From positions 1-64,000 of the forward strand of contig NW_026853344.1 in the NCBI RefSeq assembly GCF_026571515.1: DNA of 64,000 nt, in the 5' to 3' direction. Source of the stretch: Ruditapes philippinarum (lineage: Eukaryota). Positions 4,265-39,138 of this stretch are shown piece after piece. Numbering within the stretch: the stretch's first letter is position 1; each line of letters opens with the position of its first letter. The translations under genes were made by a program, and so were the position numbers. The notes below the pieces were generated by a model, which had not been told where the DNA came from, did not search any database, and worked only from the letters and a program-made list of their open reading frames with translations.

Positions 4265-5520
4265 TTACCCAGTGAAATATCCTTTAACTGAAGGTAATTC
4301 TTTATCAAGTTTTATCAGCAATTCCTTTGCTTTTTCAACTGCATCAGTGCTAGAATTTGCTAAAACTACATTATCTAAGCCAGCAGTCCATGTGGTGTGA
4401 TAGTTAGATATTTTACGCTGTTTGTTATCAATATATACGTGGGGGATATTGAGAAGTGTTGATAGAATATGACCGTGAAGACGATCAGTGATTACTACTC
4501 GACCTCTCTGTAAAAACATCATTCCATTGGTTGTCTTAAGAAACGAGTCTTCCATTGGCGAGTCCCCACGATGGGTTTTCCATATTAACCAATCAGAAAC
4601 GTGCATACGATAACCTTCCGGAGCTGCCGGTGTATTGTAGTGTGGAGACTCTTTATCGGTGCGCTTTAACCAAAGTATATCGAACGTTGGATGCATGAAG
4701 CGAGGAACGAAACCAATCTGGTAGGCAATATCTGGTGATAATAGGGAACGTACGTTAGGGAAGAGCTTCTTGCCAAGCTCGAAAGATACCTTATCTCGCC
4801 ATAGAAACGTAAGCTTCGGATGAGATGCATATATTTTCTGGCAGAACTTAATGTGAGAATCTGGTCCCATTGTCAAAATACTTTGTGGAAACATGACAAT
4901 GTTGAACGGCATGAATCGTTTTATTTGTTTACTACGAGAAAAATCTGACGAAGGCCAACCAATGACATTTCCGCCACCATGAAAAAGAATGACAAGATCT
5001 TTACTTGTATAATTTTTACTGATGTTATGAGCTCTGTATATTTGATTGTCTGTGCAAAATACTTTACATGCAAACACAATTTCGATTTTGAGTTTCCTCA
5101 AAAGCAATGTTTCTCCAACAGTAATCGCCGAGTCACCTTTGTTTTCCGAGGTAGAATAATCGAATAGCATTGCATATTTATACCCGCCCAACAGGGACTT
5201 GAAAATATTCATGTGAATTCTCTGAGCTTCGTCAATTACATCTGACCGTTTTGTATGTAATGGAGAAAGTTTATTAGTTTCTTCTGGATTGTGTACTAGA
5301 TCTAATGATAGGAAGTCTATGATGTTGAATGTCGCTTGCTTTGACAGAGATAAATTATTCCACAACAATTTATAGCTATCATTGTTTACATCAGTATATT
5401 TCATTTTATGTTTTGGTAGCCCTAACATCATCTTCGGTATCTCGAAGACTTGATATACTGCCAGAATAGCCAAAGTGAAAGTAACCGAAGTAAAGAAATG
5501 TCTCCTGTACCCCATCACAG
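4265..5520 (-). CDS. Polysaccharide pyruvyltransferase exon, copy 1 (Pvg1-like, N-terminal signal-anchor)
   Basis: Open 417-aa ORF with family motifs NKGD, GGGN, PQS, RD..S, PDIA and TDRLHGHI, and a hydrophobic N-terminal segment. Acceptor TATTTCAG| lies immediately upstream (AG at 5522-5521). Confidence 0.9.
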
Positions 5521-5898
5521 CTGAAATATAAAAACAAAGTTCAGTTTGATTCTAGATGATACTTTTTATATACAGGTACTTTCGTTTTTCTGAGACTTTT
5601 TCGAATAAATTGATACAACAATTGAACAACAACAACAACCATAATTGATGTAAGAATATTTTACTTAGACTATATAAAATGAACTAGTCATTTTCTACAT
5701 TTGATAATGAAAATATTATATATAATGTGTAACATCTCAAATAATGAAGTATATGTCATGGTTCACAACAAAATAGTTTACGCCTTAATATATTAATATA
5801 TATATTTATATATATAAAGGACTAAAGAAAGAAGGAATAACAAACCCATTAAGAACTATCATTAGTATCATAATGGTGTTACAGATTCTTCAACTCAC

Positions 5899-6814
5899 TT
5901 TTCAATATCTTACTTGACCCTTCGTTGATTTGGTTACTATTTAACTCTCGTAGTATAGAAAACGCATAAATTGCAAGACCTTTTACACAAATGAAAAGTT
6001 CAATGAAATTTACGATTGACGATGTTTTTGAGCCTGTTACGTATAATAAACCAAGAACAGCAAGTCTTTTCAAAATGTTTCCAAATGCATGACCAACAAC
6101 GGAGAAATGGTGAAGTACAACTACCGTAGATATGTAGCTATAAATAGCATGAAATAAAGAAGATCCTATGAGAAGAAAGTATAATTTTGCGGTTCCTGGG
6201 GGTGCTGTCCCGATATCAAAAAGAACCAATGCTCCTACGGCAAAAACAACAAATAGTCCATATCCAATAATGGTTTTGTTGATTATGAACTTAGAATGTG
6301 ATATGTGATTCTTTTTCATGTACACGTTTCTCAGGGATAAACATATATTAGAAATAAACGCTAGAACCGTGGCTTAGGAAACATTTAACTTCAATGTGTT
6401 ATTTTCTTGTGCAAATAATATTGCACCAAAAGCAACAGTTGGAATACTGATCCATTGTAGATATGGCAGTCTCACTTTCAGAATTATTTTTTGTAATAAA
6501 GCACTGGTGACAGGTTCCATGAGTTTAATAGAAAATGTAGAAGCCGCATATGTAACAGCCATGCTCCAGTTTGTCGCTAAAGTTGCGCATGCATGAGCAG
6601 TGAAAATGACAAGCTTGTGAACCATATCTCCTTTATTTGTGTCACCCGTAAACGATGCTACTTGCATGTAGAAGAACATCTGTAGTGCACTTAAAACAAT
6701 CACACTGTATTCTCTTTCATGAATAAACGATGTCGATTCTATGAGAAATAGTTTCGCACAGAAATGGCATGCAAACGATGTTAACGTTCAGAAAATGAAA
6801 ACGAACATCATCAT
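5899..6814 (-). pseudogene. TPT/PEP-translocator-family transporter exon, copy 1, with two in-frame stops
   Basis: Colinear with the intact copy 4 exon (IKLMEP, SLRNV, GNILKR). TGA replaces Trp at 6790-6788 and TAA replaces Lys at 6376-6374. Donor A|GTGAGT is at 5898-5893 (intron 5898-5521). Confidence 0.85.
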
Positions 6815-12660: not shown

Positions 12661-13556
12661 ATGATGTTGTTTGTTTTCATTGGCTGGACAATAACATCGT
12701 TTGCATGTCACTTCTGTGCCAAACTATTTATAAAGGAATCGACATCATTCATTCCTGGAAGTTGAAATAACATACATGTAATTGTTTTTACTGTTCTACA
12801 AGTGTTCTTCTACATGCAAGTAGCATCGTTTACGGATGACAATGATAAAGGGGGTTATGGTTAACAAACTTGTCATTTTCATTGCTCACGCATGCGCGAC
12901 TTTAGCGACAAACTGGAGCATGGCTGTAACATATGTAGCTTCTACATTTGCTGTTAAACTAATGTAACCTGTAACCAGTGCTTTATTACAAATTTTTTTC
13001 TAAAAATCGAATTGTCAAATCGACAGTAGATCAGTATTCCTGCTGTTGTTTGTGGTTCAATATTATTTGCTCAAGAAAATAACACATGGAAGTTAGGAAC
13101 TGTTTTTGCGTTTATTTCTAATATATGTTTATCCCTGAGAAACGTGTACATGAAAAAGAATCACATATCACATTCTAAGTTCATAATTAACAAAACCCAT
13201 ATTGGATTAGGACTATTTGTTATTTTTGCCGTAGGAGCATTGGTTCTTGTGAACATCGGGATAGCACCCACAGGAACCGCAAAATTATACTTTCTTCTCT
13301 TAGGATCTTCTTTATTTCATGCTATTTATAGCTACATATCTACGGTAGTTGTACTTCACCATTTCTCTGTTGCTGGTCATGCATTTGGAAACATTTTGAA
13401 AAGACTCGCTGTTCTTGATTTATTATACGTAACAGGCTTTAAAACATCGTTAATCGTAAATTTCATTGGACTTTTCATGTGCAACAGGCATGACAATTTA
13501 TGCGTTTTCTAAATTACAAGAATTGAATCAGCATCAAATCAACAAAGAGTTTCAAA
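12661..13556 (+). pseudogene. TPT/PEP-translocator exon, copy 2, with multiple stops and frameshifts
   Basis: Homologous to 31108-32011 but carries GGA>TGA (~12763), an extra G in a G-run (~12850), GAA>TAA (~12965), TAC>TAG (~13027) and deletions. Donor A|GTGAGT at 13557 is retained. Confidence 0.88.
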
Positions 13557-13884
13557 GTGAGTGAAAGGAGTTATAATATATCATTATAAAGCTGTTCACA
13601 TTTCTAATTCTAAACCTGCTGATTTTGTGTTATGACTTAGCTTAGCTTTATTTTAGAATAGTCCATTGAAAGTTTTAGATACTTCAGTATCAAAATACAA
13701 TATTAAATTACAAAAAGCAAAGAGCCAGGTCAGATTTAACTGATATAATACATATATTTGTAGTTGGTTGCCATAGGTTAATTTATCCCTAACATATGCT
13801 ATGTCATTTAGAAAGACATAAGATAAAGTCTCAGAAAAAGATGGTTTTTTCAAGAATAAAACCAAATTTTATTTTATGTTTCAG

Positions 13885-15143
13885 CTGTGATGAGCTACAA
13901 AAGACATTTCTTCTTTGCCTTGATTCCTATCATTGTAATTATTCTGGCAATGAATCAGTTCTTCGAAGGGCATACAATGACGTTAGGGTTATTGAAATGT
14001 AGAACGAAAGTTGATAATGGAAATAATGATAGCTATAAATTGTTGTGGAATAATTTATCTCTGTCAAAGCAAGCGACATTCAACATCAAAGACTTCCTAA
14101 CATTAGATCTAGCACACAATCCAGAAGAAACTAATAAACTTTCTATATTGCTTACAAAACGGTCAGATGTAATTGACGAAGCTCAGAGAATTCACATGAA
14201 TATTTTCAAGTCCCTGTTGGGCGGGTATAAATATGCAATGTTATTCGATTATTCTCCCTCAGAAAACAAAGGTGACTCGGCGATTAGTGTTGGAGAAATA
14301 TTGCTTTTGAGGAAACTCAAAATCGAAATTGTGTTTGCATGTAGAAATTTTGCTGCTGCGGATTATCAGTTTGAAAGAGCTTACAACATCAGTAAAACAT
14401 ATACAAGTAAAGATCTTGTCATTCTTTTTCATGGTGGCGGAAATGTCATTGGTTGGCATGAGGCAGACGTTGCTCGAGGTAAACACATAGCAAGATTTAT
14501 GCAGTTCAATATTGTCATGTTTCTACAAAGTATTTTGATGATGGGAGGTGATTTCCTCATAGAATTTTGCCAGAAAATATATGCATCTCATCCGAGACTT
14601 ACGTTTCTATGGCGAGATAAGGTATCTTTCCGGCTTGGCAAGAAGCTCTTCCCTAAGGTACGTTCGTTATTTTCACCAGATATTGCCTACCAGATCGGTT
14701 TCGTTCCTCGCTTCATGCATCCAACGTTCGATATACTTTGGATAAAACGCACCGATAAAGAGTCTCCACACTACAATACACCTCTAGCACCAGAAGGATA
14801 TCGTATGCATGTTTGTGATTGGTTAATGTGGAAAACCCCGCGTGGGGACTCGCCAATGGAAAACATTTTTTTTATGACAACCAATGGAATGATGTTTTTA
14901 CAGAGAGGTCGAGTAGTTATCACTGATCGTCTTCACAGTCATATTCTATCAACACTTCTCAATATCCCCCACGTATATATTGATAACAAACAACGTAAAA
15001 TATCTAACTATCACACCACATGGACTGCTGGCTTAGATAATGTAGTTTTAGCAAATTCTACTATTGACGCAGTTGAAAAAGCAAAGGAATTGCTGATAAA
15101 ACTTGATAAAGAATTACCTTCAGTTAAAGGATATTTCATATAG
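13885..15143 (+). CDS. Polysaccharide pyruvyltransferase exon, copy 2
   Basis: Open 418-aa ORF with acceptor TTTCAG| at 13884 and ATG at 13890. It carries PQS>LQS and DRLHG>DRLHS relative to all other copies. Confidence 0.85.
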
Positions 15144-18079: not shown

Positions 18080-18547
18080 ATGATGCTGTTTGTTTTCATT
18101 GGCTGGACACTAACATCGTTTGCATGTCATTTCTGTGCAAAACTATTTATAAAGGAATCGACATCATTCATTTCTGGAAATGGAAATAACATAATTGTTT
18201 TAACTGTTCTACAAGTGTTCTTCTACATGCAAGTGGCATCGTTTACGGATAACAATGATAAAGGGATTATGGTTAACAAACTTGTCATTTTCACTGCTCA
18301 CGCATGCGCGACTTTAGCTACAAACTGGAGCATGGCTGTAACATATGTTGCTTCAACATTTGCAATTAAACTCATGGAACCTGTCACCAGTGCTTTATTA
18401 CAAAAATTTATTCTTAATAATGAATTGTCATATCTACAGTACATCAGTATTCCAGCTGTTGTTTGTGGTTCAATATTATTTGCTCAAGAAAATAACACGT
18501 GGGAGTTAAATGTATCCAAAGGAACAGTTCTTGCGTTTATTTCTAAT
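18080..18547 (+). pseudogene. TPT/PEP-translocator exon, copy 3, 5' part (interrupted by retrotransposon)
   Basis: 156 clean codons ending ...AFISN. The exon continues in frame at 25658 once the element is removed. Confidence 0.88.
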
Positions 18548-19191
18548 TTATGTTTGCACCTGGCAAGACTCAGCAGTTTATTTATGTCAAGATAAAATAG
18601 AACAAATACCAAATTGGATGAAAATGTCCAGGCCCAGAGGGCACTGGACTGTTTATTTAAAAAACAAGAAAGAAAGGCATATAAAGCTTATATAAGTAAA
18701 AAACATGACATAAAGTTGGACAGCAATTCGTCCTGTACATATAAAAGTAACATGTAGTAAAACAAACAATATTAAAACTAGGCAAGGAGTTGTGGTGGGG
18801 TGGTGGCGGTAGAGTGAAACAATTTTCAGATAACAATTTTGCGTGCGACACCTAGTGGTGAAAAATTTTCTATGATCCGAAAGATAGAATTACACCGAAA
18901 AGTGTTTAAACACCAGAAATGCCTTAAATGTGCTAAGATGTAAAATAAGATGAAACTGTACAAACATAAATCACTTTATACTGTTCCACTATATAAAGTA
19001 TAATTTTATGTTTGCACCTGGCAAGACTCAGCAGTTTATTTATGTCAAGATAAAATAGAACAAATACCAAATTGGATGAAAATGTCCAGGCCCAGAGGGC
19101 ACTGGACTGTTTATTTAAAAAACAAGAAAGAAAGGCATATAAAGCTTATATAAGTAAAAAACATGACATAAAGTTGGACAGCAATTCGTCC
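18548..19191 (-). repeat. 3' split direct repeats B1-A2-(spacer)-B2 of the Ngaro-type element
   Basis: 18548-18733 equals 19006-19191 (TTATGTTTGCACC...GCAATTCGTCC). 18810-19005 equals 25462-25657. Confidence 0.93.
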
Positions 19192-19950
19192 ACCACTGGT
19201 CCAACCAAAGAGACTTGACAGGCGCAAATTTAGACGACAAAGAAATTTAAATTGTATAGATGCCTACCACTTTCCCAAACCACCAAAAAAAAACAAATAT
19301 ATGTTACAGCAAGTTCTAGAGAAAGTTATAACAAATCTACATGAGTATGATCAAGCAAATCATAGTAGAGAACACTAATGTGGAACAATTTGGAATTCCT
19401 ATCAGGTTACATATATGTAGTCATAAAGTGTAACTAATATATATATATATATATGTATAAGTAACATGAGAAAGAAAAATATTTACAGTTATAACAAAGC
19501 TATTTACAACAAAATGGGTATTAACAACTGTATTATTTTTAAGGGTAAAACTTGTCACATGAGCAAGTGCTTGAAAGTAAAAACTTACAATATAGAAGTT
19601 AACAGGGGTAGACCCTGCCACTAGCAGGTCTATTATTAAAACACTTTCGACTAGATAAATTATTATGAGGCTTATTAAAGCGATGTTAGACAAAAATATG
19701 TGATTTTATTTACTGGAATAATAGTGAGACAAATTGTCAGACTAGAATTATGTTGACTAGTTATGATAGTAAAAATTTACAATACATAAATATAAAAAGC
19801 AATAAAATAAATACAAAAGTACAGATCTTCGGCTCAATAAGGAGCAATTGAAGAAGCATTGCAATGGATTTCATTTTGACTAGCAATATTTTGAGTATGT
19901 ATATAGTTGTAAATAATTAGAAAATGTTACAAAAACCAGCATCAAGATAA

Positions 19951-20399
19951 TTGTGTCACACCCCAATGACACAATAAGCAAATACATATTAACAAAACAA
20001 TTGTCACTTATTTGTGTTTGCCCAATGACACAAAATGCACATACGGAGTAAAACCAAGTCCCTTTAATTGAATCACACTAATGACACACAAAGGCGTATG
20101 TACATGAATAAAAGCAACGTTATTTGTTTGTATCACACCCCGATGACACAAAAAGAGTAATTACACAATACTAGAATAAGATTAATATGATCGTGTCACA
20201 CCCCAATGACACACAAAGTCATATATATATACATGAACAGAAACTGTCATTTTATTTTGCATCACACCCCGATGACACAAAAAAGTAATTGCACAATATT
20301 AGAATAAGAATAATATGGTTGTGTCACACCCCAATGACACAAAGGAAGCAAATAGACATAAATGAAACACCCATGTTTGTGTCACACCCCAATGACACA
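19951..20399 (-). repeat. Array of 8 regularly spaced ~23-bp palindromic repeats (plus-strand TTGTGTCACACCCCAATGACACA) with variable AT-rich spacers, in the element's 3' UTR
   Basis: Copies start at 19951, 20012 (degenerate), 20068 (degenerate), 20128, 20191, 20257, 20319 and 20377, with period 56-66 nt. Each has a TGTGTCA/TGACACA stem. Confidence 0.85.
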
Positions 20400-20443
20400 G
20401 AAAGGCATTTAAATATGGGTAAGGCAGCAGATAGGATTTTTGA

Positions 20444-21394
20444 TCAAGAAACAGGATTTCTTACATTAGCTAGTCTGATGTATCTTTTAAAGGCATTTGA
20501 TTTCCATCTGCCCATTTGCATAATGGTTTGTTCGGGGATTCCTGACAAAATAGCTTGTGTACATGCCCCTATCCTAAAGCTGTGGAGATGATAATACTGA
20601 CGGCTGAGGTGACATAAGTCAAGTAGTTGATCAAAAACACCTTTGAATTTTGAAATAGTGATAGGAGTATTTAATGATGAAATAAAGAGGGGGCCATCAC
20701 GAGCACCCCTGATGGTCAGATACCTGTGAAGTGATTTAATTGGACAAAGAACTTTGGTTCTTTGTAAAGTGACATCAATTGGCTTGACCTCTTTTTTAGT
20801 CTTGTAATTATGTAACTTCAAAGATACATGGGACTTAGTCAGATGAACATGATTGAATTGAATGACTTTGTTACACTTCCTTAAATTTCTTGGAAGAAGT
20901 TCACCCATTCTAAAGAACCCATTGTAAGTGACCAGTATTATAGCTTTGTACAGATATCTATCATACATATTGTCTTTAAAGATATGGTCACAGGCCACTA
21001 TGAGTTTCTTTATGTGGACTTTTAACAGAGGCAAACGTTGATCAAAAGAGGGGGTTAGTTTTTTACACCCCAGGATCATTCTTTTAACAATTACATCATC
21101 ACAAGGGTCAGGGAACCTAGCCACTTGGTGGAAATAAGTTATTGCTGATAAGTGACTGCTAATTGAAGATGGCTTATAGTTCTTTAAATGTAAATAAGCC
21201 ACAAAGTCAGAAATGACAGTGGCAGAAAAAGGCACGTCATGGTACGAATTATTTGATGTTAGGAACTCAACAAATTTTGCCCAAAACCTGTCATATGCTT
21301 GTCTGGTAGTTCTTGCTAGGGACGCCGCTACCAAATTGCCTTTTATTTCAGCAATAGCCATGGAGTCATTGACAGTGGAATGGCTGCTGGGCAT
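20444..21394 (-). CDS. Tyrosine recombinase (YR) of the Ngaro-type retrotransposon
   Basis: 316 aa with catalytic motifs GFFRMGEL, HSFRIGA and GRWKSNAFKRY. Overlaps the RNase H C-terminus in another frame. Confidence 0.93.
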   Translation of the reverse strand: MPSSHSTVNDSMAIAEIKGNLVAASLARTTRQAYDRFWAKFVEFLTSNNSYHDVPFSATVISDFVAYLHLKNYKPSSISSHLSAITYFHQVARFPDPCDDVIVKRMILGCKKLTPSFDQRLPLLKVHIKKLIVACDHIFKDNMYDRYLYKAIILVTYNGFFRMGELLPRNLRKCNKVIQFNHVHLTKSHVSLKLHNYKTKKEVKPIDVTLQRTKVLCPIKSLHRYLTIRGARDGPLFISSLNTPITISKFKGVFDQLLDLCHLSRQYYHLHSFRIGACTQAILSGIPEQTIMQMGRWKSNAFKRYIRLANVRNPVS

Positions 21395-23206
21395 TTGTTT
21401 AGATGAGGAGCGAGTTGAAGGGCTTCTTTGACCTGTAATCGAGATAATTTATCACAGATTATATTAGTAGATGAACTAATATGTTTTGATTTAAAACAGA
21501 AGTTGTATTTGAGGGCCTTTAAAACTATAAATCTGATCAGTTTCATCATTATTTTGTCTTTAGAAGTTTGCTTGTTTAAACAGTAGACTACAGACAAGTT
21601 GTCACTTATAAACAAGACATTCGTTCCTGACCATAAATGACCAAACATTACAACTGCTAATGCTATTGGATAGAGCTCTAAGATATTGATATGGAGCTGT
21701 TGGATTTGAAGTGGAAAACAGCCAAATGTCCATTCATTTGAGTAAACAATTCCGAAGCCTTTAGAACCGGCTGAATCTGTGAATAGATTCATAGTTTGAT
21801 TTGATATAAATCTGTCCCCGGTAAGAAGAGTGCAACCATTGTAATCATGAATGAATTCATGCCACAATTGAATATCAGCCCTGCAATCATTATTCAATTT
21901 GATGTAGTGATGTTTACTATTTATGCCCATAGTTTTATCATATAGACGTCGTAAGAAACAACGACCCGGTTTAATGACTCTACAAGCAAAGTTTAAATGA
22001 CCTAATAATGATTGCAATTCCCTTAGAGTGACTTTCTTTTGTTTCCTGTACATGTTAAGTAAGGATCTTAGGGCTTGAACTTTGTTCTGAGGAAGTTTGG
22101 CGATCATTGACTTGGTATCAATCATAATACCATGTACTTCTACACAGGTCGAAGGTAATGACGTTTTAGCATGTTTGATTGGTAAATTCAAGTCTTTTGC
22201 CAGTGACATGAATTTATTCAATGAGTTTAAACATTCCCCAGTATCAGCAGAACCCACAAAAATGAAATCGTCTATAATGTGTGATACTTTTTGTACTTCA
22301 CATTTTGTTTTCAAAATCCACTGTAAAGAACATGAAAATTTTTCAAATATAGCTACCGAGGAAGAAGCTCCCATAGGTAGTGCTGTATCAAAATAAAATT
22401 TATTGTCAAATGAAAACCCCAATTTCCTGAAATCTAAAGGAGACATAGGGATAACTCTGTATGCATCTTCAATATCAGCCTTAGCAATTTCACAATTGTA
22501 ACCCGAAGATAGGACTAATTTAGCTACATCATCAAATAGTTCTAAACAAACCTCTAAATAATCTTGGAATAAATGAGTTAACTGAGGATCCCCATGAGGG
22601 GTAAGATAGATCATGTATGAGTCGAAAGGAGTTAGGGTCTTTCTTAGGGACGACACCTAAAGGGGAGCAAACTAAGTCATGGAATGGTTTAGTCTTGAAA
22701 GGCCCTTTAATTTTTTGCTTCAAAATCTCAGAGGATAGCTTTGTGCGAACAAAATCAAGGTGAGTGCTAACAGAGCGGTGGTTGTTGGCTGACAATGCCG
22801 GGACATAACCGACAGTACCTAAACTAAAGCCGTAAGTAAAACCATCAATTACCGATTGTTTGAGATAATAACCATCAAGATATTGTTGTAGGGAGGATAC
22901 ATTTATAGGGGTTGATACCTTAAAGCCCTTATTACTTGGCTGTGTTGTCACCTGTTTTGATGGGTTGTTTGAATTTCTTAAAATCAAGGTGGCAGGAGAT
23001 GGCTGCATGCTGTCCTTCACAGTTTGCACATTTGTGACTGACAGAACAGGACTTTTTTGAGCAAGAGGATCTTTTTTGAAATTCCCAACAATAACCTTTT
23101 CTTTGAAAGATGTGGGGCGGGAGGTATTTCCGAAAGGAATGGTTGTTGTTTTGGACTTTGTGATTGGCTGGCTTGTCAATTGAGCAAAAAAGGAATGTTT
23201 CAGCAT
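21343..23206 (-). CDS. Reverse transcriptase-RNase H (pol), split by one frameshift near 22565
   Basis: ORF 22532-23206 has SPLGVVPKK and FRLIHDLSYP. ORF 21343-22656 has KADIEDAYR, LPMG, HIIDDF, LFTDSAGS, INILELYPI and SDN. The frames switch at SVNSFIP/QDY. Confidence 0.88.
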
Positions 23207-23897
23207 GGATTATCCCCCATGGTTGAGGGTTGGTTGCCCTTAGCTGCCTAAACTTAGTGTCGTACAGCAACCAGTTATCAGTAGATTGGGCCATTTTTTG
23301 AATAATAGACATATATTGGAAGAGTTGGCTACTCTCCAAAGGGTACTTGCAACAATACACATCGGCGTATTGTTGAAAGGCTCTAGACCAAGTTAGTATA
23401 GTGCTTATTTGTTTCTTGGACCCCTCCTGAATAGAGGTGACCGTTCTATTTCCAGATTCCTGGATAGTGGTGGTTTTTGATATGTTTTTTTCTCTAAAAT
23501 AAAGAACCCCCAGATCTACAAATTCCCGATTCCATATCTGCTGCCTTAGTTTTGAGTCTATAGGCGGATGGACTAGACTAAAAGATCCTAGATCCACCGA
23601 GTTGTTACTTAAATCAAGGGGAACAGGTCCAGAATCTATGGTGCTTAAACTAACACCATCCTCACTAGTGTCCATTTGGTCATGGTTAGTGGACATGGAT
23701 TGGACATCCTGGTCTGGTTCAATTTCATAATTGGCCGTACCGTCATCTTTATCCGTGGTAGGCAGTAAATCCACAATTTCCTTGAGCACTTCCTCATCTT
23801 TGCTGATGGCAGTGGCGATGAGTTGTGCCAACTTGCTGCTACCATTTTTCTTCTGCTTCTTGCCAGATTTGGCTTTGTTTGGTGCGACTTTGGGCAT
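22932..23897 (-). CDS. Gag-like ORF of the Ngaro-type retrotransposon
   Basis: 321 aa with WLLYDTKFRQ and the C-terminal Cys/His finger CWEF..C....C...HKCANCEGQH....C. Overlaps the start of pol. Confidence 0.85.
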   Translation of the reverse strand: MPKVAPNKAKSGKKQKKNGSSKLAQLIATAISKDEEVLKEIVDLLPTTDKDDGTANYEIEPDQDVQSMSTNHDQMDTSEDGVSLSTIDSGPVPLDLSNNSVDLGSFSLVHPPIDSKLRQQIWNREFVDLGVLYFREKNISKTTTIQESGNRTVTSIQEGSKKQISTILTWSRAFQQYADVYCCKYPLESSQLFQYMSIIQKMAQSTDNWLLYDTKFRQLRATNPQPWGIIHAETFLFCSIDKPANHKVQNNNHSFRKYLPPHIFQRKGYCWEFQKRSSCSKKSCSVSHKCANCEGQHAAISCHLDFKKFKQPIKTGDNTAK

Positions 23898-24660
23898 TCT
23901 GAAATGTAATGTCTTACAAGAATTAATTATAGGTGGGAATATGCTGGGATACTCCCACTTTGATATGGTATAAGAATAGTCTACATGTACAATAAGTGAA
24001 TATAACCAACTGGAACCAATTGTTAAACCAGTGGTAAAAGTGTACTTGTAGAAAAGTATCCAACCAGTGTTACCCGGAAAAATTCACACGCAGGTGATAA
24101 AATTAAATAAATAATGTAAATAGTATGGTATAATTGTGCATCCCCAAACAAACACACGCACGTGTAAATATCTGACTAGCAGAATGTATAAACGGGGAGC
24201 AAACCATGTTCAAATGGTCAACCATACAACGAATATCCTGGGTATCAACTGGTGGATGTGTCGGTATAAAAAATTAACAATGCCAACTCAGGGCACTAAA
24301 TGTTGTTAACAGGGACCTTATTAGGATAATGGTCCAAAACTAAACAGAATAGATGAGAATTGTATGGCAACACAATTCATAAATAATGCAACAATGAAAG
24401 GCAAATTGAATTATCACTTACTTATCTATGGCAAATCTTTTAATGTTAGTTATACCAAATCAAATCTTTGCATGAAATAAATGTCCCACACAACTATCAC
24501 TCATTCACTGTTTTGTCAAATTGAGTGTATGTAATCTGAAACACAATGTATGAAAAGAACATGTAAAAGAAATACATATACAAATATATATAAATATATA
24601 CACATGTGAAGACAGGAAACTTATTGTGATAAACATTTTTCAGCCAATAAAATGGAGCCT

Positions 24661-25218
24661 CTAACTGAAGCATAGTAACGAGGCATAGTAACGAGGCATG
24701 CCCTTTTGGTTGTCAACATGGACCCCATCATTTGCAACATAATCCCTAATAAAACGACGGTTGAAGTTGTTCCGTTTGTGAGTCCAAAATATTAGGGAAG
24801 GCTTGTCTTCACAATATGATTTCAATAACTGATTTGTTGTGTCAGCCTTGGCATTATATACATGGTCACCAGCTCTATGTAAAATTTCATAGATGACAAC
24901 AACTTGACTACCACGACTAAATATATTTGAACATAAACTGATAATGCTATCCACCAACTGATTTGGCTGCAAATTTGGAATGCATAAATCATTACTTCCA
25001 ATATCTACAACTGTGCAGTTTATCTCCAATTCATCTACCAAATAAACATCGCACCAAATTGATTTCGCTTTAGACTTTGACGCGACATAAGCTCCGCCCA
25101 CTCCATGCCAATAAACTTGCACGCGGTCCGAATCTAAATTCAAATTCAACAAACATTTCGTACCACACCATCTCTGGAGGCGCTTTGTAAAAGAGTGGCC
25201 CAGTAACAAAACATTCAT
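24661..25218 (-). CDS. SGNH/GDSL hydrolase ORF at the 5' end of the element, C-terminus frameshifted by a 13-bp duplication
   Basis: Blocks LLLGHSF, GVGG, DIGSNDL and DGVH, with ATG at 25218. GCATAGTAACGAG is tandemly duplicated at ~24670-24695. Confidence 0.82.
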   Translation of the reverse strand: MNVLLLGHSFTKRLQRWCGTKCLLNLNLDSDRVQVYWHGVGGAYVASKSKAKSIWCDVYLVDELEINCTVVDIGSNDLCIPNLQPNQLVDSIISLCSNIFSRGSQVVVIYEILHRAGDHVYNAKADTTNQLLKSYCEDKPSLIFWTHKRNNFNRRFIRDYVANDGVHVDNQKGMPRYYASLLCFS

Positions 25219-25461
25219 AACTATTCTCAAACAAAGAGATTAATGAAAAGGAACGATACAAATTATGTAACAAACCCACGCTATCCACGCTGTCCTAAGT
25301 AGGTCACTCACGCTCGTCGTTGATGCTGTGACAGTGTCGCCGAGAAAACTAACTGCTTTTTAACCAGAAGCTATTTGCGACTACGTGGTAGATTAAATAA
25401 GCTTCCCCAAATAAATAATTATTGAGAATAACTGTTGACGAGCAATAAATAAAATATAAAA

Positions 25462-25657
25462 TAGAGTGAAACAATTTTCAGATAACAATTTTGCGTGCGA
25501 CACCTAGTGGTGAAAAATTTTCTATGATCCGAAAGATAGAATTACACCGAAAAGTGTTTAAACACCAGAAATGCCTTAAATGTGCTAAGATGTAAAATAA
25601 GATGAAACTGTACAAACATAAATCACTTTATACTGTTCCACTATATAAAGTATAATT
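25462..25657 (-). repeat. 5' terminal repeat A1 of the Ngaro-type element
   Basis: 196-bp match to 18810-19005. Confidence 0.93.
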
Positions 25658-26093
25658 ATATGTTTATCCCTGAGAAACGTGTACATGAAAAAGAATCACA
25701 TATCACATTCTAATTTCATAGTTAACAAAACCCATATTGGATTAGGACTATATGTTGTTTTTGCCATAGGAGCATTGGTTCTTGTGAACATCGAAATAGC
25801 ACCCCCAGGATCCCCAAAATTGTACTTTCTTCTCTTAGGATCTTCTTTATTTCATGCTATTTATAGCTACATATCTACGATAGTTGTACTTCACCATTTT
25901 TCCGTTGTTGGTCATGCATTTGGAAACATTTTGAAAAGACTTGCTGTTCTTGGTTTATTATACGTAACAGGCTCAAAAACATCGTCCATCGTAAATTTCA
26001 TTGGACTTTTCATATGTGCAACAGGGCTGACAATTTATGCGTTTTCTAAAGTACAAGAATTGAATCAGAATCAAATCAACAAAAAGTTTCAAA
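25658..26093 (+). pseudogene. TPT/PEP-translocator exon, copy 3, 3' part
   Basis: Resumes ICLSLRNV...GNILKR... with no stops. Donor A|GTGAGT at 26094 (intron 26094-26446). Confidence 0.88.
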
Positions 26094-26446
26094 GTGAGTG
26101 AAATGAGTTATAATATACCATTATAAAGCTGTTTACACTTCTAATTCTAAACCTGCTGATTTTGTGTTATTTGCTTAGCTTTAACATTAGAATTAACCAT
26201 TCAAAGTTTAAGATATTTCAGTATCAAAATACAAATATTAAATAACAAACAGCATAGAGCCAGGTCAGATTTAATCGGTATACTACATGTATTTGTATTT
26301 GGTTGCCCTAGGTATATTTATCCCTAATATATGCTATGTCCTTTAGAAAGGCATTTGATTAAGTCCCAGATAAAGATGAATTTTCTATGTGAATATAATT
26401 ATGTAGAATCATCTAGAATTGAACCAAATTTTGTTTTTTGTTTCAG

Positions 26447-27702
26447 CTGTGATGAGCTTCAAAAGACATTTATTCTTTACCTTGGTTACTATCATTGCAT
26501 TTTTTCTGGCAGTAAATCAGTTTTTCGAGGGAAATACGATGACGTTAGAGTTATTGAAATGTAGAACGAACTATGTTGATGTAAATAATGATAACTTTAA
26601 ATCGTTGTGGAATAACTTATCTCTGTCAAAGCAAGCGACATTCAACATCAAAGACTTCCTAACATTAGATCTAGCACACAATCCAGAAGAAACTAATAAA
26701 CTTTCTATATTGCTTACAAAACGGTCAGATGTAATTGACGAAGCTCAGAGAATTCACATGAATATTTTCAAGTCCCTGTTGGGCGGGTATAAATATGCAA
26801 TGCTATTCGATTATTCTCACTCGGAAAACAAAGGTGACTCGGCGATTACTGTTGGAGAAACATTGCTTTTGAGGAAACTCAAAATCGAAATTGTGTTTGT
26901 ATGTAAAATTCATTGCATAGATTATCAACTAGACAGAGCCCATAACATCAGTAAAAAATATACAAGTAAAGATCTTGTCATTCTTTTTCATGGTGGCGGA
27001 AATATCATTGGTTGGCCTTTGTCAGACGTTTCTCGTGGTAAACAAATAAAACGATTCATGCAGTTCAACATTGTCATGTTTCCACAAAGTATTTTGATAA
27101 TGGGACCAGATTCTCACATAAAGTTCTGCCAAAAATTATATGAATCTCATCAGAGGCTTACGTTTCTATGGCGAGATAAGGTATCCTTCGATCTTGGCAA
27201 GAAGCTCTTCCCTAAGGTACGTTCGTTATTATCACCAGATATTGCCTACCAGATTGGTTTCGTTCCTCGCTTCATGTATCCAACGTTCGATATACTTTGG
27301 ATAAAACGCGCCGATAAAGAGTCTCCACACTACAATACACCGGCAGCTCCGGAAGGTTATCGTATGCATGTTTCTGATTGGTTGATGTGGAAAACCCCGC
27401 GTGGGGACTCGCCAATGGAAGACTCGTTTCTTATGACAACCAATGGATTGGTGTTTTTACAGAGAGGTCGAGTAGTTATCACTGATCGTCTTCACGGTCA
27501 TATTTTATCAACACTTCTCAATATCCCCCACGTATATATTGATAACAAACAACGTAAAATATCTAACTATCACACCACATGGACGGCTGGTTTAGATAAT
27601 GTAGTTTTAGCAAATTCTAGTATTGACGCAGTTGAAAAAGCAAAGGAATTGCTGCTTAAACTTGATAAAGAATTACCTTTAGTTAAAGGATATTTCATAT
27701 AG
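26447..27702 (+). CDS. Polysaccharide pyruvyltransferase exon, copy 3
   Basis: Open ORF with all motifs intact. Acceptor TTTCAG| at 26446 and ATG at 26452. Confidence 0.9.
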
Positions 27703-31107: not shown

Positions 31108-32011
31108 ATGATGTTGTTTGTTTTCATTGGCTGGACAATAACATCGTTTGCATGTCACTTCTGTGCCAAACTATTTATAAAGGAATCGACATCATTCACT
31201 CCTGGAAATGGAAATAACATAATTGTTTTAACTGTTCTACAAGTGTTCTTCTACATGCAAGTAGCATCGTTTACGGATGACAATGATAAAGGGGTTATGG
31301 TTAACAAACTTGTCATTTTCACTGCTCACGCATGCGCGACTTTGGCGACAAACTGGAGTATGGCTGTAACATATGTAGCTTCTACATTTGCTGTTAAACT
31401 AATGGAACCTGTAACCAGTGCTTTATTACAAAAACTTATTCTAAAAATCGAATTATCATATCTACAGTACATCAGTATTCCAGCTGTTGTTTGTGGTTCA
31501 ATATTATTTGCACAAGAAAATAACACATGGAAGTTAAATGTTTCCAAAGGAACAGTTCTTGCGTTTATTTCTAATATATGTTTATCCCTCAGAAACGTGT
31601 ACATGAAAAAGAATCACATATCACATTCTAAGTTCATAATTAACAAAACCCATATTGGATTAGGACTATTTGTTGTTTTTGCCATAGGAGCATTGGTTCT
31701 TTTTGATATCGGGATAGCACCCACAGGAACCGCAAAATTATACTTTCTTCTCATAGGATCTTCTTTATTTCATGCTATTTATAGCTACATATCTACGGTA
31801 GTTGTACTTCACCATTTTTCCGTTATTGGTCATGCATTTGGAAACATTTTGAAAAGGCTTGCTGTTCTTGGTTTATTATACGTAACAGGCTCAAAAACAT
31901 CGTCAATCGTAAATTTCATTGGACTTTTCACATGTGCAACAGGGCTGGCAATTTATGCGTTTTCTAAAGTACAAGAGTTGAATCAGCACCAAATTAACAA
32001 AGAGTTTCAAA
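31108..32011 (+). CDS. Transporter exon, copy 4 (intact): triose-phosphate/PEP translocator family (SLC35E-like, DMT fold)
   Basis: Multi-pass hydrophobic ORF with VKLMEP, SLRNV, FHAIY and HAFGNILKR, matching the K..EP and GN..KR motifs of phosphate translocators. Confidence 0.88.
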
Positions 32012-33611
32012 GTGAGTGAAAGGATATCATTATAAAGCTGTTCACATTTTTAATTCTAAACCTGCTGATTTTGTGTTATTTGCTTAGCTTTAATATTAGA
32101 ATTAACCATTCAAAGTTTAAGATATTTCAGTATCAAAATACAATATTAAATTACAAACAGCAAAGAGCCAGGTCAGATTTAACTGATATAATACATATAT
32201 TGGTAGTTGGTTGCCATAGGTATATTTATCCCTAATATATGCTATGTCCTTTAGAAAGACATTTGATATAGTCTCAGAAAAAGATGATTCTTTTGTATGT
32301 GAATATATTTAGACTCATCTAGAATAAAACCAAACTTTATTTTATGTTTCAGCTGTGATGAGCTATAAAAGACATTTATTCTTTAGCTTGGTTACAATTA
32401 TTGTATTTTTTCTGGCACTGAATCAGTTCTTCAGGGGACATACGATGATGTTAGAGTTATTGAAATGTAGAACGAAATATGTTGATGGAAATAATGATAG
32501 CTATAAATTGTTGTGGAATAATTTATCTCTGTCAAAGCAAGCGACATTCAACATCAAAGACTTCCTAACATTAGATCTAGCACACAATCCAGAAGAAAGT
32601 AATAAACTTTCTATATTGCTTACAAAACGGTCAGATGTAATTGACGAAGCTCAGAGAATTCACATGAATATTTTCAAGTCCCTGTTGGGCGGGTATAAAT
32701 ATGCAATGCTATTCGATTATTCTCACTCGGAAAACAAAGGTGACTCGGCAATTACTGTTGGAGAAACATTGCTTTTGAGGAAACTCAAAATCGAAATTGT
32801 GTTTGTATGTAAAATTCATTGCATAGATTATCAACTAGACAGAGCCCATAACATCAGTAAAAATTATACAAGTAAAGATCTTGTCATTCTTCTTCATGGT
32901 GGCGGAAATGTCATTGGTTGGCCTTTGTCAGACGTTTCTCGTGGTAAACAAATAAAACGATTCATGCAGTTCAACATTCTCATGTTTCCACAAAGTATTT
33001 TGATAATGGGACCAGATTCTCACGTAAAGTTCTGCAAAAAAATATATGCATCTCATCCGAGACTTACCTTTCTATGGCGAGATAAGGTGTCTTTCGATCT
33101 TGGCAAGAAGCTCTTCCCTAACGTACGGGCGATATTATCACCAGATATTGCCTACCAGATCGGTTTCGTTCCTCGTTTCATGCAACCAACGTTCGATATA
33201 CTTTGGATAAAGCGCACCGATAAAGAGTCTCCACACTACAATACACCTGCCGCACCGAAAGGATATCGTATTCACGTTTCTGATTGGTTAATGTGGAAAA
33301 CCCCGCGCGGGGACTCGCCAATGGAGGACTCGTTTCTTATGACAACCAATGGAATGATGTTTTTACAGAGAGGTCGAGTAGTTATAACTGATCGTCTTCA
33401 CGGTCATATTCTATCAACACTTCTCAATATCCCCCACGTATATATTGATAACAAACAACGTAAAATATCTAACTATCACACCACATGGACGACTGGCTTA
33501 GATAATGTAGTTTTAGCAAATTCTAGCATTGACGCAGTTGAAAAAGCAAAGGAATTGCTGATAAAACTTGATAAAGAATTACCTTCAGTTAAAGGATATT
33601 TCATAAAGTAA
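31108..33611 (+). CDS. Intact two-exon gene join(31108..32011,32353..33611): TPT/PEP-translocator-family transporter fused to polysaccharide pyruvyltransferase, 720 aa
   Basis: Donor CAAA|GTGAGT at 32012 and acceptor TTTATGTTTCAG|CT at 32352. A+CT gives Thr and keeps the frame into GTG ATG AGC. 904+1259=2163 nt, or 721 codons including the stop. Both sites are conserved in all five copies. Confidence 0.82.
32353..33611 (+). CDS. Polysaccharide pyruvyltransferase exon, copy 4
   Basis: Open ORF with NKGD, GGGN, PQS, RD, PDIA and TDRLHGHI motifs and an N-terminal TM segment. Confidence 0.9.
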
Positions 33612-36617: not shown

Positions 36618-37526
36618 ATGATGTTGTTTGTATTCATTGGCTGTACAATAACATAGTTTGCATGTCATTCCTGTGCCAAACTATTTATAAAGGAATCAAC
36701 ATCTTTCATTCCTGGAAGTGGAAATGACGTCATTGTTTTAACTGTATTACAAGTGTTCTTCTATATATGCAAGTAGCATCGTTTGCGGGTGACAATGATA
36801 AAGGGGTTATGGTTAACAAACTTGTCATTTTCATTGCTCACGCATGCGCGACTTTAGCGACAAACTGGAGCATGGCTTAAACATATGTAGCTTCTTCATT
36901 CGCTATTAAACACATGGAACCTGTCACCAGTGCTTTATTACAAAAACTTATTCTTAATTAAATCGAAATGTCATATCTACAGTACGTCAGTATTCCAGCT
37001 GTTGTTTGTGGTTCAATAATTTTTTCTCAAGAAAATAACACATGGGAGTTAAATGTTTCCAAAGGAACTGTTCTTGCGTTTATTTCTAATATATGTTTAT
37101 CCCTGAGAAACGTGTACATGAAAAAGAATTACATATCACATTCTAAGTTCATAATTAACAAAACCCATATTGGATTAGGACTATTTGTTGGTTTTGCCGT
37201 AGGAGCATTGGTTCTTGTGAACATCGGGATAGCACCCCCAGGATCCCCAAAATTATACTTTCTTCTCACAGGATCTTCTTTATTTCATGCTATTTATAGC
37301 TACATATCTACGGTAGTTGTACTTCACCATTTTTCTGTTATTGGTCATGCATTTGGAAACATTTTGAAAAGACTTGCTGTTCTTGGTTTATCATACGTAA
37401 CAGGCTCCAAAACATCGTCAATCGTAAATTGTATTGGACTTTTCATATGTGCAACAGGCCTGACAATTTATGCGTTTTCTAAAGTAAAAGAGTTGAATCA
37501 GCACCAAATTAACAAAGAGTTTCAAA
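36618..37526 (+). pseudogene. TPT/PEP-translocator exon, copy 5, disabled in its 5' third
   Basis: TCG>TAG (~36654), a TA insertion (~36762) and a deletion creating GCT TAA (~36877). The 3' part is open. Donor A|GTGAGT at 37527 (intron 37527-37861). Confidence 0.88.
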
Positions 37527-37861
37527 GTGAGTTGAAGGAGTTGTAATATACCATTATAAAGCTGTTTACACTTCTAATTTTAAACCTGCTGACTTTGAAT
37601 TATGCTTAGTTTTGAAATTAGAATAGTCCATTCAAATTATAAAATATTTCAATATCAAAATACAAATATTCAGTTACAAACAGCGAAGAGCCGGATTAGA
37701 TTCAACCGATATGTATTTGTATTTGGTTGCCATAGGTTAATTTATCCCTAATATGTCATTTAGGAAGACATCCGATTTAGTCTCAGAAAAATAAGTTTTT
37801 TTGTATGTGAATATATTTTAGAATCACCTAGAATAAAACCAAACTTTATTTTATGTTTCAG

Positions 37862-39138
37862 CTGTGATGAGCTACAAAAGACATTTATTCTTTACCTTGG
37901 TTACTATCATTGTATTTTTTCTGGCAGTGACTCAGTTCTTCGAGAGACATATGACGTTAGAGTTATTGAAATGTAGAACGAAATATGTTGATGGAAATAA
38001 TGGTAGTTATAAATTGCTGTGGAATAATTTATCTCTGTCAAAGCAAGCGACATTCAACATCAAAGACTTCCTAACATTAGATCTAGCACACAATCCAGAA
38101 GAAAGTAATAAACTTTCTCCATTACTTACAAAACGGTCAGCTGTAATTGACGAAGCTCAGAGAATTCACATGAATATTTTCAAGTCCCTGTTGGGCGGGT
38201 ATAAGTATGCAATTCTATTCGATCTAACTCCCTCGGAAAACAAAGGTGACTCGGCGATTACTGTTGGAGAAATATTGCTTTTGAGGAAACTCAAAATCGA
38301 AATTGTGTTTGCATGCAAATATTTTGCTGCGGATTATCAGTTTGAAAGAGCTTACAACATCAGTAAAACATATTCAAGTAAAGATCTTGTCATTCTTTTT
38401 AATGGTGGCGGAAATGTCATTGGTTGGCATGAGGCGGACGTTGCTCGTAGTAAACAAATAGCAAGATTTATGCAGTTCAATATTGTCATGTTTCCACAAA
38501 GTATTTTGATGATGGGAGGTGATTCCCTCATAAAATTTTGCCAGAAAATATATGCATCTCATCCGAGACTTACCTTTCTATGGCGAGATAAGGTATCTTT
38601 TGAGCTTGGAAAGAAGCTCTTCCCTAAGGTACGGTCGTTATTATCACCAGATCTTGCCTACCAGATTGGTTTCGTTCCTCGTTTCATGCATCCAACGTTT
38701 GATATACTTTGGATAAAGCGCACCGATAAAGAGTCTCCACACTACAATACACCGGCAGCTCCGGAAGGATATCGTATGAATGTTTCTGATTGGTTGATGT
38801 GGAAAACCCCGCGTGGGGACTCGCCAATGGAAAACATTTTTCTTATGACAACAAATGGAATGATGTTTTTACAGAGAGGTCGAGTAGTTATCACTGATCG
38901 TCTTCACGGTCATATTCTATCAACTCTTCTCAATATCCCCCACATATATATTGATAACAAACAACGTAAAATATCTAACTATCACACCACATGGACTGCT
39001 GGCTTAGATAATGTAGTTTTAGCAAATTCTAGTATTGACGCAGTTGAAAAAGCAAAGGAATTGCTGATAAAACTGGATAAAGAATTACCTTCAGTTAAAG
39101 GATATTTCATAAATAAAGTAAGAAAAGACAATGCATAA
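37862..39138 (+). CDS. Polysaccharide pyruvyltransferase exon, copy 5
   Basis: Open 424-aa ORF with motifs intact and a short C-terminal extension through a lost stop. Acceptor at 37861. Confidence 0.9.

Follow-up and report, generated by a model that had tools for sequence, protein, structure and literature searches.

Do two adjacent open reading frames (ORFs) in the genome of Ruditapes philippinarum encode two proteins or one, and what would a single product do? The pair lies on the forward strand of a 64,000-nucleotide stretch of DNA (the window; positions 1–64,000 of NW_026853344.1), contig C1831 in our analysis of the 1.41-Gb assembly. According to the ORF listing and a Pfam scan, the first frame (31108–32019, plus strand, 303 residues) is a full-length TPT-family domain and the second (32355–33611, plus strand, 418 residues) is a PS_pyruv_trans domain. 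The original prediction read the two as a spliced fusion of a phosphoenolpyruvate (PEP) transporter and a pyruvyltransferase acting in the Golgi, an interpretation that our analysis supports in part. The two ORFs are two exons of one gene, confirming that observation, and the resulting 720-residue membrane protein is likely, though with real reservations, a Golgi PEP/phosphate antiporter fused to a luminal ketal pyruvyltransferase. The gene is laid out as follows:

31108–32011, plus strand: exon 1 coding sequence of LOC132736578, residues 1–301 and the first base of codon 302; a 10-helix domain of the TPT or plastidic phosphate translocator (pPT) type
32012–32352, plus strand: phase-1 intron, GTGAGT...TTTCAG, 341 nt, 27% GC, from the splice sites and the RefSeq junction
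32353–33611, plus strand: exon 2 coding sequence, comprising the 11th membrane helix, a stem and the Pvg1-like ketal pyruvyltransferase domain; stop codon 33609–33611

The donor GTGAGT at 32012–32017 makes 32011 the last base of exon 1 (phase 1), leaving a single base of a split codon there, and the acceptor TTTCAG, ending at 32352, sets the start of exon 2 at 32353 with the other two bases, the split codon A/CT encoding Thr. The open frame closes two codons past the donor and opens nine codons ahead of the acceptor, the pattern expected of exon boundaries. We searched each exon separately and carried out the full-length work on the database proteins XP_060579718.1 and XP_060571655.1 (working label P0001). 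The 720-residue spliced product is identical to XP_060579718.1 (P0165; LOC132736578, Ruditapes philippinarum), which RefSeq labels "uncharacterized protein" and which is encoded on a 77,733-nt contig; its residues 1–301 match the translated exon 1, T stands at position 302, and the exon 2 ORF supplies residues 303–720. The in-frame GTGAGT/TTTCAG junction that had been claimed (phase 1, 341-nt intron, 720 residues) thus matches the database protein exactly, and an identical junction is found in four RefSeq models (P0165, P0001, P0163 and P0168). Because of this identity, the architecture was already annotated in RefSeq, albeit as "uncharacterized", which answers the earlier question of its presence in databases; both the gene model and the domain pair are in RefSeq and UniProt and can be reached by ordinary domain annotation.

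Judged from sequence and from the structural model, exon 2 encodes a Pvg1-like ketal pyruvyltransferase domain at residues ~390–710. Its ORF scored 72.1 bits against PS_pyruv_trans (PF04230; cut-off 25.3), and a sequence search of PDB returned Pvg1p of S. pombe (5AX7, E 8e-42) as the closest solved relative. The AlphaFold model of XP_060579718.1, built on an alignment of 28 sequences, had a mean predicted local distance difference test score (pLDDT) of 83.2, exceeding 88 for most of residues 380–710, and presented the Pvg1p fold with its two alpha/beta/alpha halves. Foldseek aligned it to 5AX7 with E 2.2e-17, a target template-modelling (TM) score of 0.84 and ~31–32% identity in the alignment. 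Three residues of the catalytic type were located by alignment to Pvg1p:

32742–32744 (D432), 33078–33080 (R544) and 33393–33395 (R649), plus strand: catalytic-type residues in exon 2, aligned to D106, R217 and R337 of Pvg1p

The corresponding residues of Pvg1p have been proposed to be catalytic (PMC4872226), and D432, R544 and R649 are invariant in the alignment of 28 fusion proteins. H168 of Pvg1p, which influences acceptor choice, is a Ser in the clam protein.

Exon 1, in turn, encodes a transporter domain. Its ORF scored 48.6 bits against TPT (PF03151; cut-off 30) over profile positions 4–290 of 291, and the sole PDB sequence match of the transporter was GsTPT2, the triose-phosphate/phosphate translocator of Galdieria (5Y78, E 1e-8). 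Foldseek likewise matched 5Y78 (E 4.7e-8, TM score 0.70, ~21% identity), ranking it above nucleotide-sugar transporters. Alignment to GsTPT2 placed four residues of the phosphate-binding type:

31396–31398 (K97), 31780–31782 (Y225) and 31852–31857 (K249-R250), plus strand: phosphate-binding-type residues in exon 1

They correspond to the phosphate-binding K204, Y339, K362 and R363 of GsTPT2, residues that plant pPTs strictly conserve and that exchange requires (bioRxiv 10.1101/169169). Y225, K249 and R250 never vary among the 28 fusions, and at least 90% of these retain K97. Such a conserved Lys/Tyr/Lys-Arg tetrad implies 1:1 exchange of phosphate for organic phosphate, and the assignment of a phosphorylated substrate exchanged for phosphate is, at the level of sequence, well supported. 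That this substrate is PEP we infer from the attached enzyme and by analogy with yeast, in which Golgi pyruvylation depends on Pvg1p together with the Golgi PEP transporters Pet1p and Pet2p (PMC6801904; PMC4872226).

How the two domains would be arranged in the membrane can be predicted from the helices between them. AlphaFold gave ten membrane-spanning segments within residues 2–294, then a long helix at 300–339, and then the alpha/beta domain. The helix contains a hydrophobic core:

32373–32429, plus strand: hydrophobic core of the 11th helix, residues 309–327; hydropathy 2.25, with K307-R308 ahead of it, inside the AlphaFold helix 300–339

In the pPT fold the N and C termini both lie on the inner side (bioRxiv 10.1101/169169). 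Lys and Arg residues number 13 on the predicted cytosolic side versus 7 on the luminal side, the linker holding K298, K307 and R308, and the sequons N138 and N144 fall in a predicted luminal loop. Because a hydrophobic 11th helix follows a 10-helix transporter with both ends inside, a luminal catalytic domain is the expected topology: with a cytosolic N terminus, helix 10 is predicted to end in the cytosol and helix 11 to carry the enzyme to the lumen. The proposal that an extra helix at the start of exon 2 places the catalytic domain in the lumen therefore agrees with the predicted topology, both in its 10+1 helices and in its charge distribution.

These features suggest how the protein could work. 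Residues 1–295 would form the 10-helix pPT-type transporter, helix 11 (~309–327) would cross the membrane, and residues ~390–710 would be the transferase. Sitting in the Golgi membrane, the transporter would bring in PEP from the cytosol against phosphate from the lumen, where the transferase domain would move the pyruvyl group from PEP to the terminal sugar of a glycan or glycolipid, making a pyruvate ketal. Ketal pyruvyltransferases use PEP and release phosphate (PMC8615578), and the phosphate released here would leave in exchange for the next PEP. Since the released phosphate would be the counter-substrate of the antiporter, PEP supply and use would be matched one to one. The fusion would fix this 1:1 ratio and hold the two activities close together, which suggests a simple stoichiometric logic for tying donor import to transfer.

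Is the fusion peculiar to this clam, or to animals? An exhaustive search with exon 1 retrieved 164 representatives at E <= 0.001 among 1.84 billion proteins, so few that the transporter group is a small and distinct one; a narrower search for exon 1 homologues returned five proteins within its length range and identified no stand-alone relatives. Many of the matches were 600–1180 residues long, and in 15 of 20 long matches scanned against Pfam, PS_pyruv_trans lay above its cut-off downstream of TPT, with one more just below. Many seemingly unfused matches probably represent single exons called as ORFs in genomes that lack annotation. At least 15 gastropod and bivalve species, Aplysia among them, show the same domain order. 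Full-length fused models were found for Lottia, Haliotis (4 species), Patella, Gigantopelta, Pomacea, Elysia, Plakobranchus, Aplysia, Physella, Bulinus, Nucella and Littorina, as well as for the copepod Tigriopus, of which Tigriopus californicus is a named example; Aplysia californica has two fused genes, one of them LOC101845863. Farther afield, the fusion is present in the starfish Asterias rubens (XP_033646128.1, LOC117305368, 1176 residues, with a C-terminal Gly_transf_sug/Gb3_synth domain), in the chytrid Spizellomyces punctatus (XP_016605134.1, SPPG_09475) and in the red alga Gracilariopsis chorda (PXF40522.1), where it is annotated as a chloroplast triose-phosphate translocator. A hydrophobic peak stands right after the transporter domain in 7 of the 8 distant fusions scanned; the Asterias protein (P0272) gave none at the threshold used. 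Uninterrupted fused ORFs of 723–791 residues were also called as single genes on Logan contigs of 2.7–4.1 kb, which are probably transcripts, and a Trinity transcript ORF of Gracilaria changii contains both domains. The proposed search for TPT with PS_pyruv_trans in Metazoa thus succeeded, in molluscs, copepods and starfish, and its outcome leaves no room for a clam peculiarity, given the gastropods, bivalves, copepods and starfish that share the architecture, nor for an animal novelty, given the red algae and the chytrid. Because its carriers range from molluscs, copepods and starfish to a chytrid and red algae, the architecture is pan-eukaryotic and not an animal invention. The broader claim of a widespread eukaryotic enzyme class, so far undescribed, in molluscs, copepods, echinoderms, chytrids and red algae, namely a luminal ketal pyruvyltransferase in one covalent chain with a PEP/phosphate antiporter whose counter-substrate is the phosphate that the transferase releases, seems to us evenly poised between right and wrong.

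The starfish protein is one of several triple fusions of 1105–1176 residues (P0272, P0295 and P0280) in which TPT is followed by PS_pyruv_trans. The third domain, Gly_transf_sug/Gb3_synth, is present in P0272 and P0295, and such a triple fusion suggests one polypeptide that would add a sugar and then pyruvylate that sugar.

A recent bacterial transfer was considered as the origin and rejected, the nearest bacterial-type match (P0156) being ~27% identical as against ~31–32% with E 8e-42 to Pvg1p; matches of ~50% identity on contigs of up to 12.9 Mb, which exceed the length of bacterial genomes and are presumably eukaryotic, also count against it. A protein labelled "MAG: Candidatus Thiodiazotropha sp." (P0026) shares 49% identity with the transferase exon of the clam and lies on a 2268-nt contig; it is probably clam-host DNA binned into a symbiont genome.

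The studied gene has close neighbours of its own kind. By tblastn the window holds five units of transporter plus transferase, one of them inverted:

4265–6814, minus strand: copy 1 (inverted); transporter exon 6814–5899 with 2 in-frame stops, intron 5898–5521, transferase exon 5520–4265 intact
12661–15143, plus strand: copy 2; transporter exon 12661–13556 with 6 stops and frameshifts, intron 13557–13884, transferase exon 13885–15143 intact
18080–27702, plus strand: copy 3; transporter exon, with a ~7.1-kb retroelement splitting it at about 18556/25655; intron 26094–26446, transferase exon 26447–27702 intact
31108–33611, plus strand: copy 4, the studied gene; transporter exon intact, transferase exon open
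36618–39138, plus strand: copy 5; transporter exon 36618–37526 with a frameshift and 3 stops, intron 37527–37861, transferase exon 37862–39138 intact

The five-copy array that had been reported is real, including its inverted member; what had been overlooked is that four of the five transporter exons are disabled. Only copy 4 has an intact transporter exon, and the transferase exon is open in all five. Likewise, the claim that sites and phase are shared holds for every copy (AAAGTGAGT at the donor, TTTCAG followed by CTGTGATG at the acceptor, phase 1), but it carries less weight than it might seem to. The introns of copies 2, 3 and 5 are 87–94% identical to that of copy 4, much like the exons, and because introns are about as similar as exons, splice-site conservation among these copies is expected from recent duplication. 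The informative cases are the inverted copy 1 and the paralogues on other contigs. The intron of copy 1 is 75% identical to that of copy 4, and copy 1 carries a 15-nt in-frame insertion just ahead of the donor. Contig C2182 carries a deep paralogue, 46% identical over the transporter and 62% over the transferase, with donor GTAAAT, a different intron of ~1.9 kb and acceptor TTTCAG, in phase 1 at the homologous position; further paralogues, on contig C10294, have transporters ~80% identical and an intron of ~1.8 kb. The stop just past the donor, on the other hand, varies among the copies and is not conserved.

RefSeq models of the damaged copies make use of the same junction. That of copy 3 (P0163) starts after the retroelement, inside the damaged transporter exon. 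Copy 5 is LOC132736574, whose isoform X1 (P0168), with a truncated transporter, starts within the damaged transporter exon. In its isoform X2 (P0002) a short alternative first exon is joined to the same acceptor, so that the transferase has no membrane helix besides its own. Under neutral decay about 3–11 disabling changes would be expected per transferase exon (a rough Poisson estimate with the rate taken from the neighbouring transporter exons), and since all of them are open, the transferase exons of the array are probably still used. Judging by these sequences, the transferase exon can apparently serve alone as well, and transferase-only paralogues may draw on a transporter provided in trans.

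The ~7.1-kb element in copy 3 (window 18556–25655) has minus-strand ORFs at 20444–23897 that match reverse transcriptase (PF00078) and tyrosine recombinase (PF00589, PF02899), and this combination identifies the insertion as a DIRS/Ngaro-type retroelement. An imperfect repeat of ~12 nt (TAATTTATGTTT / TAATTATATGTTT) stands on both sides of it.

Elsewhere in the genome, contig C14120 carries a second array (39142–65286), colinear with the window at 94–98.5% identity, which encodes XP_060571655.1 (719 residues); it represents a haplotig or else a recent segmental duplication. In its inverted copy the transporter exon is intact and the transferase exon frameshifted, the reciprocal of copy 1 in the window. 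Genome-wide there are at least seven intact transporter exons of the family and several further transferase exons (contigs C10294, C2182, C3213, C2328 and C7950), the one on C7950 being heavily disabled. From these sequences the family looks like one of birth and death, with copy 4 sitting in a birth-and-death tandem array. The ratio of nonsynonymous to synonymous substitution rates (dN/dS) between intact transporter exons is 0.16–0.35, that of the disabled copy 1 transporter against its intact twin on C14120 is 0.85, and that among transferase exons is moderately low at 0.23–0.59.

Several observations weigh against the fused antiporter–transferase and have to be set beside the alternatives. 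The splice 32011/32353 itself rests on gene models and homologues. An ATG at 32358, two codons into exon 2, is shared by the local copies and the 62%-identical paralogue on C2182, and a single AATAAA lies in the intron, at 32323; together they make separate products possible, at least as additional isoforms. In four of the five local copies the transporter exon is lost while the transferase exon is still open, and the transferase-only isoform in RefSeq means that the fusion is non-essential for the transferase, from both of which it follows that physical coupling is not obligatory. To our knowledge, pyruvylated glycans have not been reported from Ruditapes philippinarum. Finally, the transporter departs from the plastid translocators at two specificity positions. 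In GsTPT2 His185 binds the substrate carboxylate, and Phe263 clashes with PEP in TPT and is replaced by Asn in AtPPT1, a small or polar residue at this position giving space to C3 of PEP (bioRxiv 10.1101/169169). In the alignment to GsTPT2, His185 is not kept, the aligned residue being Thr78, with a near-invariant His74 one helical turn away; the PEP-discriminating position (Phe262/263) is Leu159, conserved in most fusions, and Leu is smaller than Phe but is not Asn. With His185 replaced by Thr78 and Phe263 by Leu159, PEP specificity is unreadable from sequence.

The first alternative draws on the gene structure. The locus might mainly yield two proteins, a 303-residue transporter that stops at the TGA shortly beyond the donor and is polyadenylated within the intron, and a type II membrane pyruvyltransferase that begins at the 32358 ATG or in a different first exon, the fused model being a minor isoform or a prediction artefact. 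The ATG shared with the deep paralogue, the intronic AATAAA, isoform X2 of copy 5 and the four copies that retain only the transferase exon would all suit it, as would the S. pombe pathway, which works with separate proteins. The ATG directly behind the acceptor may be vestigial, or it may be a still-working, independent start for a transferase-only product. However, neither the different introns of the paralogues nor the 15-nt indel breaks the frame at the junction, and the stop past the donor, on which a separate transporter would end, is not conserved among the copies. Fused proteins are modelled in at least 15 species and recur as uninterrupted ORFs on short Logan contigs and in the Trinity transcript. 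For an animal terminator and promoter together, 341 nt of AT-rich sequence leave little space, and at 27% GC chance alone would be expected to produce a single AATAAA. We therefore regard mainly separate products as unlikely.

The second alternative accepts the fusion and questions the cargo: the transporter might export the phosphate product, or its substrate might be a different phosphorylated metabolite or a nucleotide sugar used for the acceptor glycan. The missing His185 and the Leu in place of the Asn of PPT at position 263 are compatible with this, Pfam TPT also holds nucleotide-sugar transporters, the fold search also matched SLC35 and Vrg4 structures, and the glycosyltransferase domain of the starfish versions would need a nucleotide sugar. 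In contrast, all four pPT phosphate-binding residues are conserved, the sole PDB sequence match is a pPT, and the fused enzyme needs luminal PEP, which pPT-like PEP transporters provide in the S. pombe precedent. A cargo other than PEP thus appears improbable. The idea that all copies of the array are decaying, and that copy 4 owes its open frame to chance and has no present function, has very little to recommend it: four of the five transporter exons are broken, other copies in the genome are pseudogenised and the dN/dS of the transferase exons is just moderately low, but intact transporter exons, at least seven of them genome-wide, differ from one another at low dN/dS, all five transferase exons are open beside transporter exons with 2–6 stops where ~3–11 disabling changes would be expected if neutral, and the catalytic and binding residues are all intact.

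Pyruvate ketals give glycans a negative charge resembling that of sialic acid. The statement that pyruvylated glycans are known in a few animals is borne out by the chemical documentation of pyruvate ketals in Aplysia nerve glycolipids and in the sponge aggregation factor (PMC6994554, PMC6801904). Reviews describe pyruvate on Aplysia glycolipids and sponge glyconectins, and none names an animal gene or the fusion. In keeping with the original prediction, which knew of no identified animal enzyme, the literature searched contained no paper naming an animal pyruvyltransferase gene, and none on animal Pvg1-like genes or on the fusion, although most subscription journals lay outside the search and absence is unproven. 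The family supplies concrete candidate genes for animal glycan pyruvylation, including the two fused genes of Aplysia californica, and the same family may explain pyruvylation of agar-type galactans in red algae. Were the broader class real, it would supply the enzyme so far missing for the pyruvylated galactose that Aplysia glycolipids and red-algal galactans carry.

Among known systems, bacterial ketal pyruvyltransferases (CsaB, EpsI/EpsO and WcfO; PF04230) share the Pfam family and the PEP-dependent chemistry of the clam domain, but they are soluble, cytoplasmic, without a transporter and ~27% identical, the clam domain being much closer to eukaryotic Pvg1p. With plastidic phosphate translocators (TPT, PPT, GPT and XPT; GsTPT2, 5Y78/5Y79) the clam transporter shares the 10-helix drug/metabolite transporter (DMT) fold and the phosphate-binding tetrad; it differs from them in having no transit peptide, in the changes of His185 to Thr and Phe263 to Leu, and in its fusion to an enzyme, and unlike these plastid-located proteins it is presumably in the secretory pathway. 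The fusions of Aplysia, Asterias, Spizellomyces and Gracilariopsis in the databases have the same order of TPT, hydrophobic segment and PS_pyruv_trans, those of the red alga and the chytrid being ~24–28% identical to the clam protein. The closest parallel is the pathway of S. pombe. The clam transferase has the fold of Pvg1p, the same catalytic D/R/R and, by prediction, a membrane anchor ahead of a luminal domain, and the clam transporter resembles Pet1p and Pet2p, by family and features, as a TPT-family transporter with pPT-like characteristics. What yeast encodes in separate genes, the clam would join through the 11th helix into one polypeptide.

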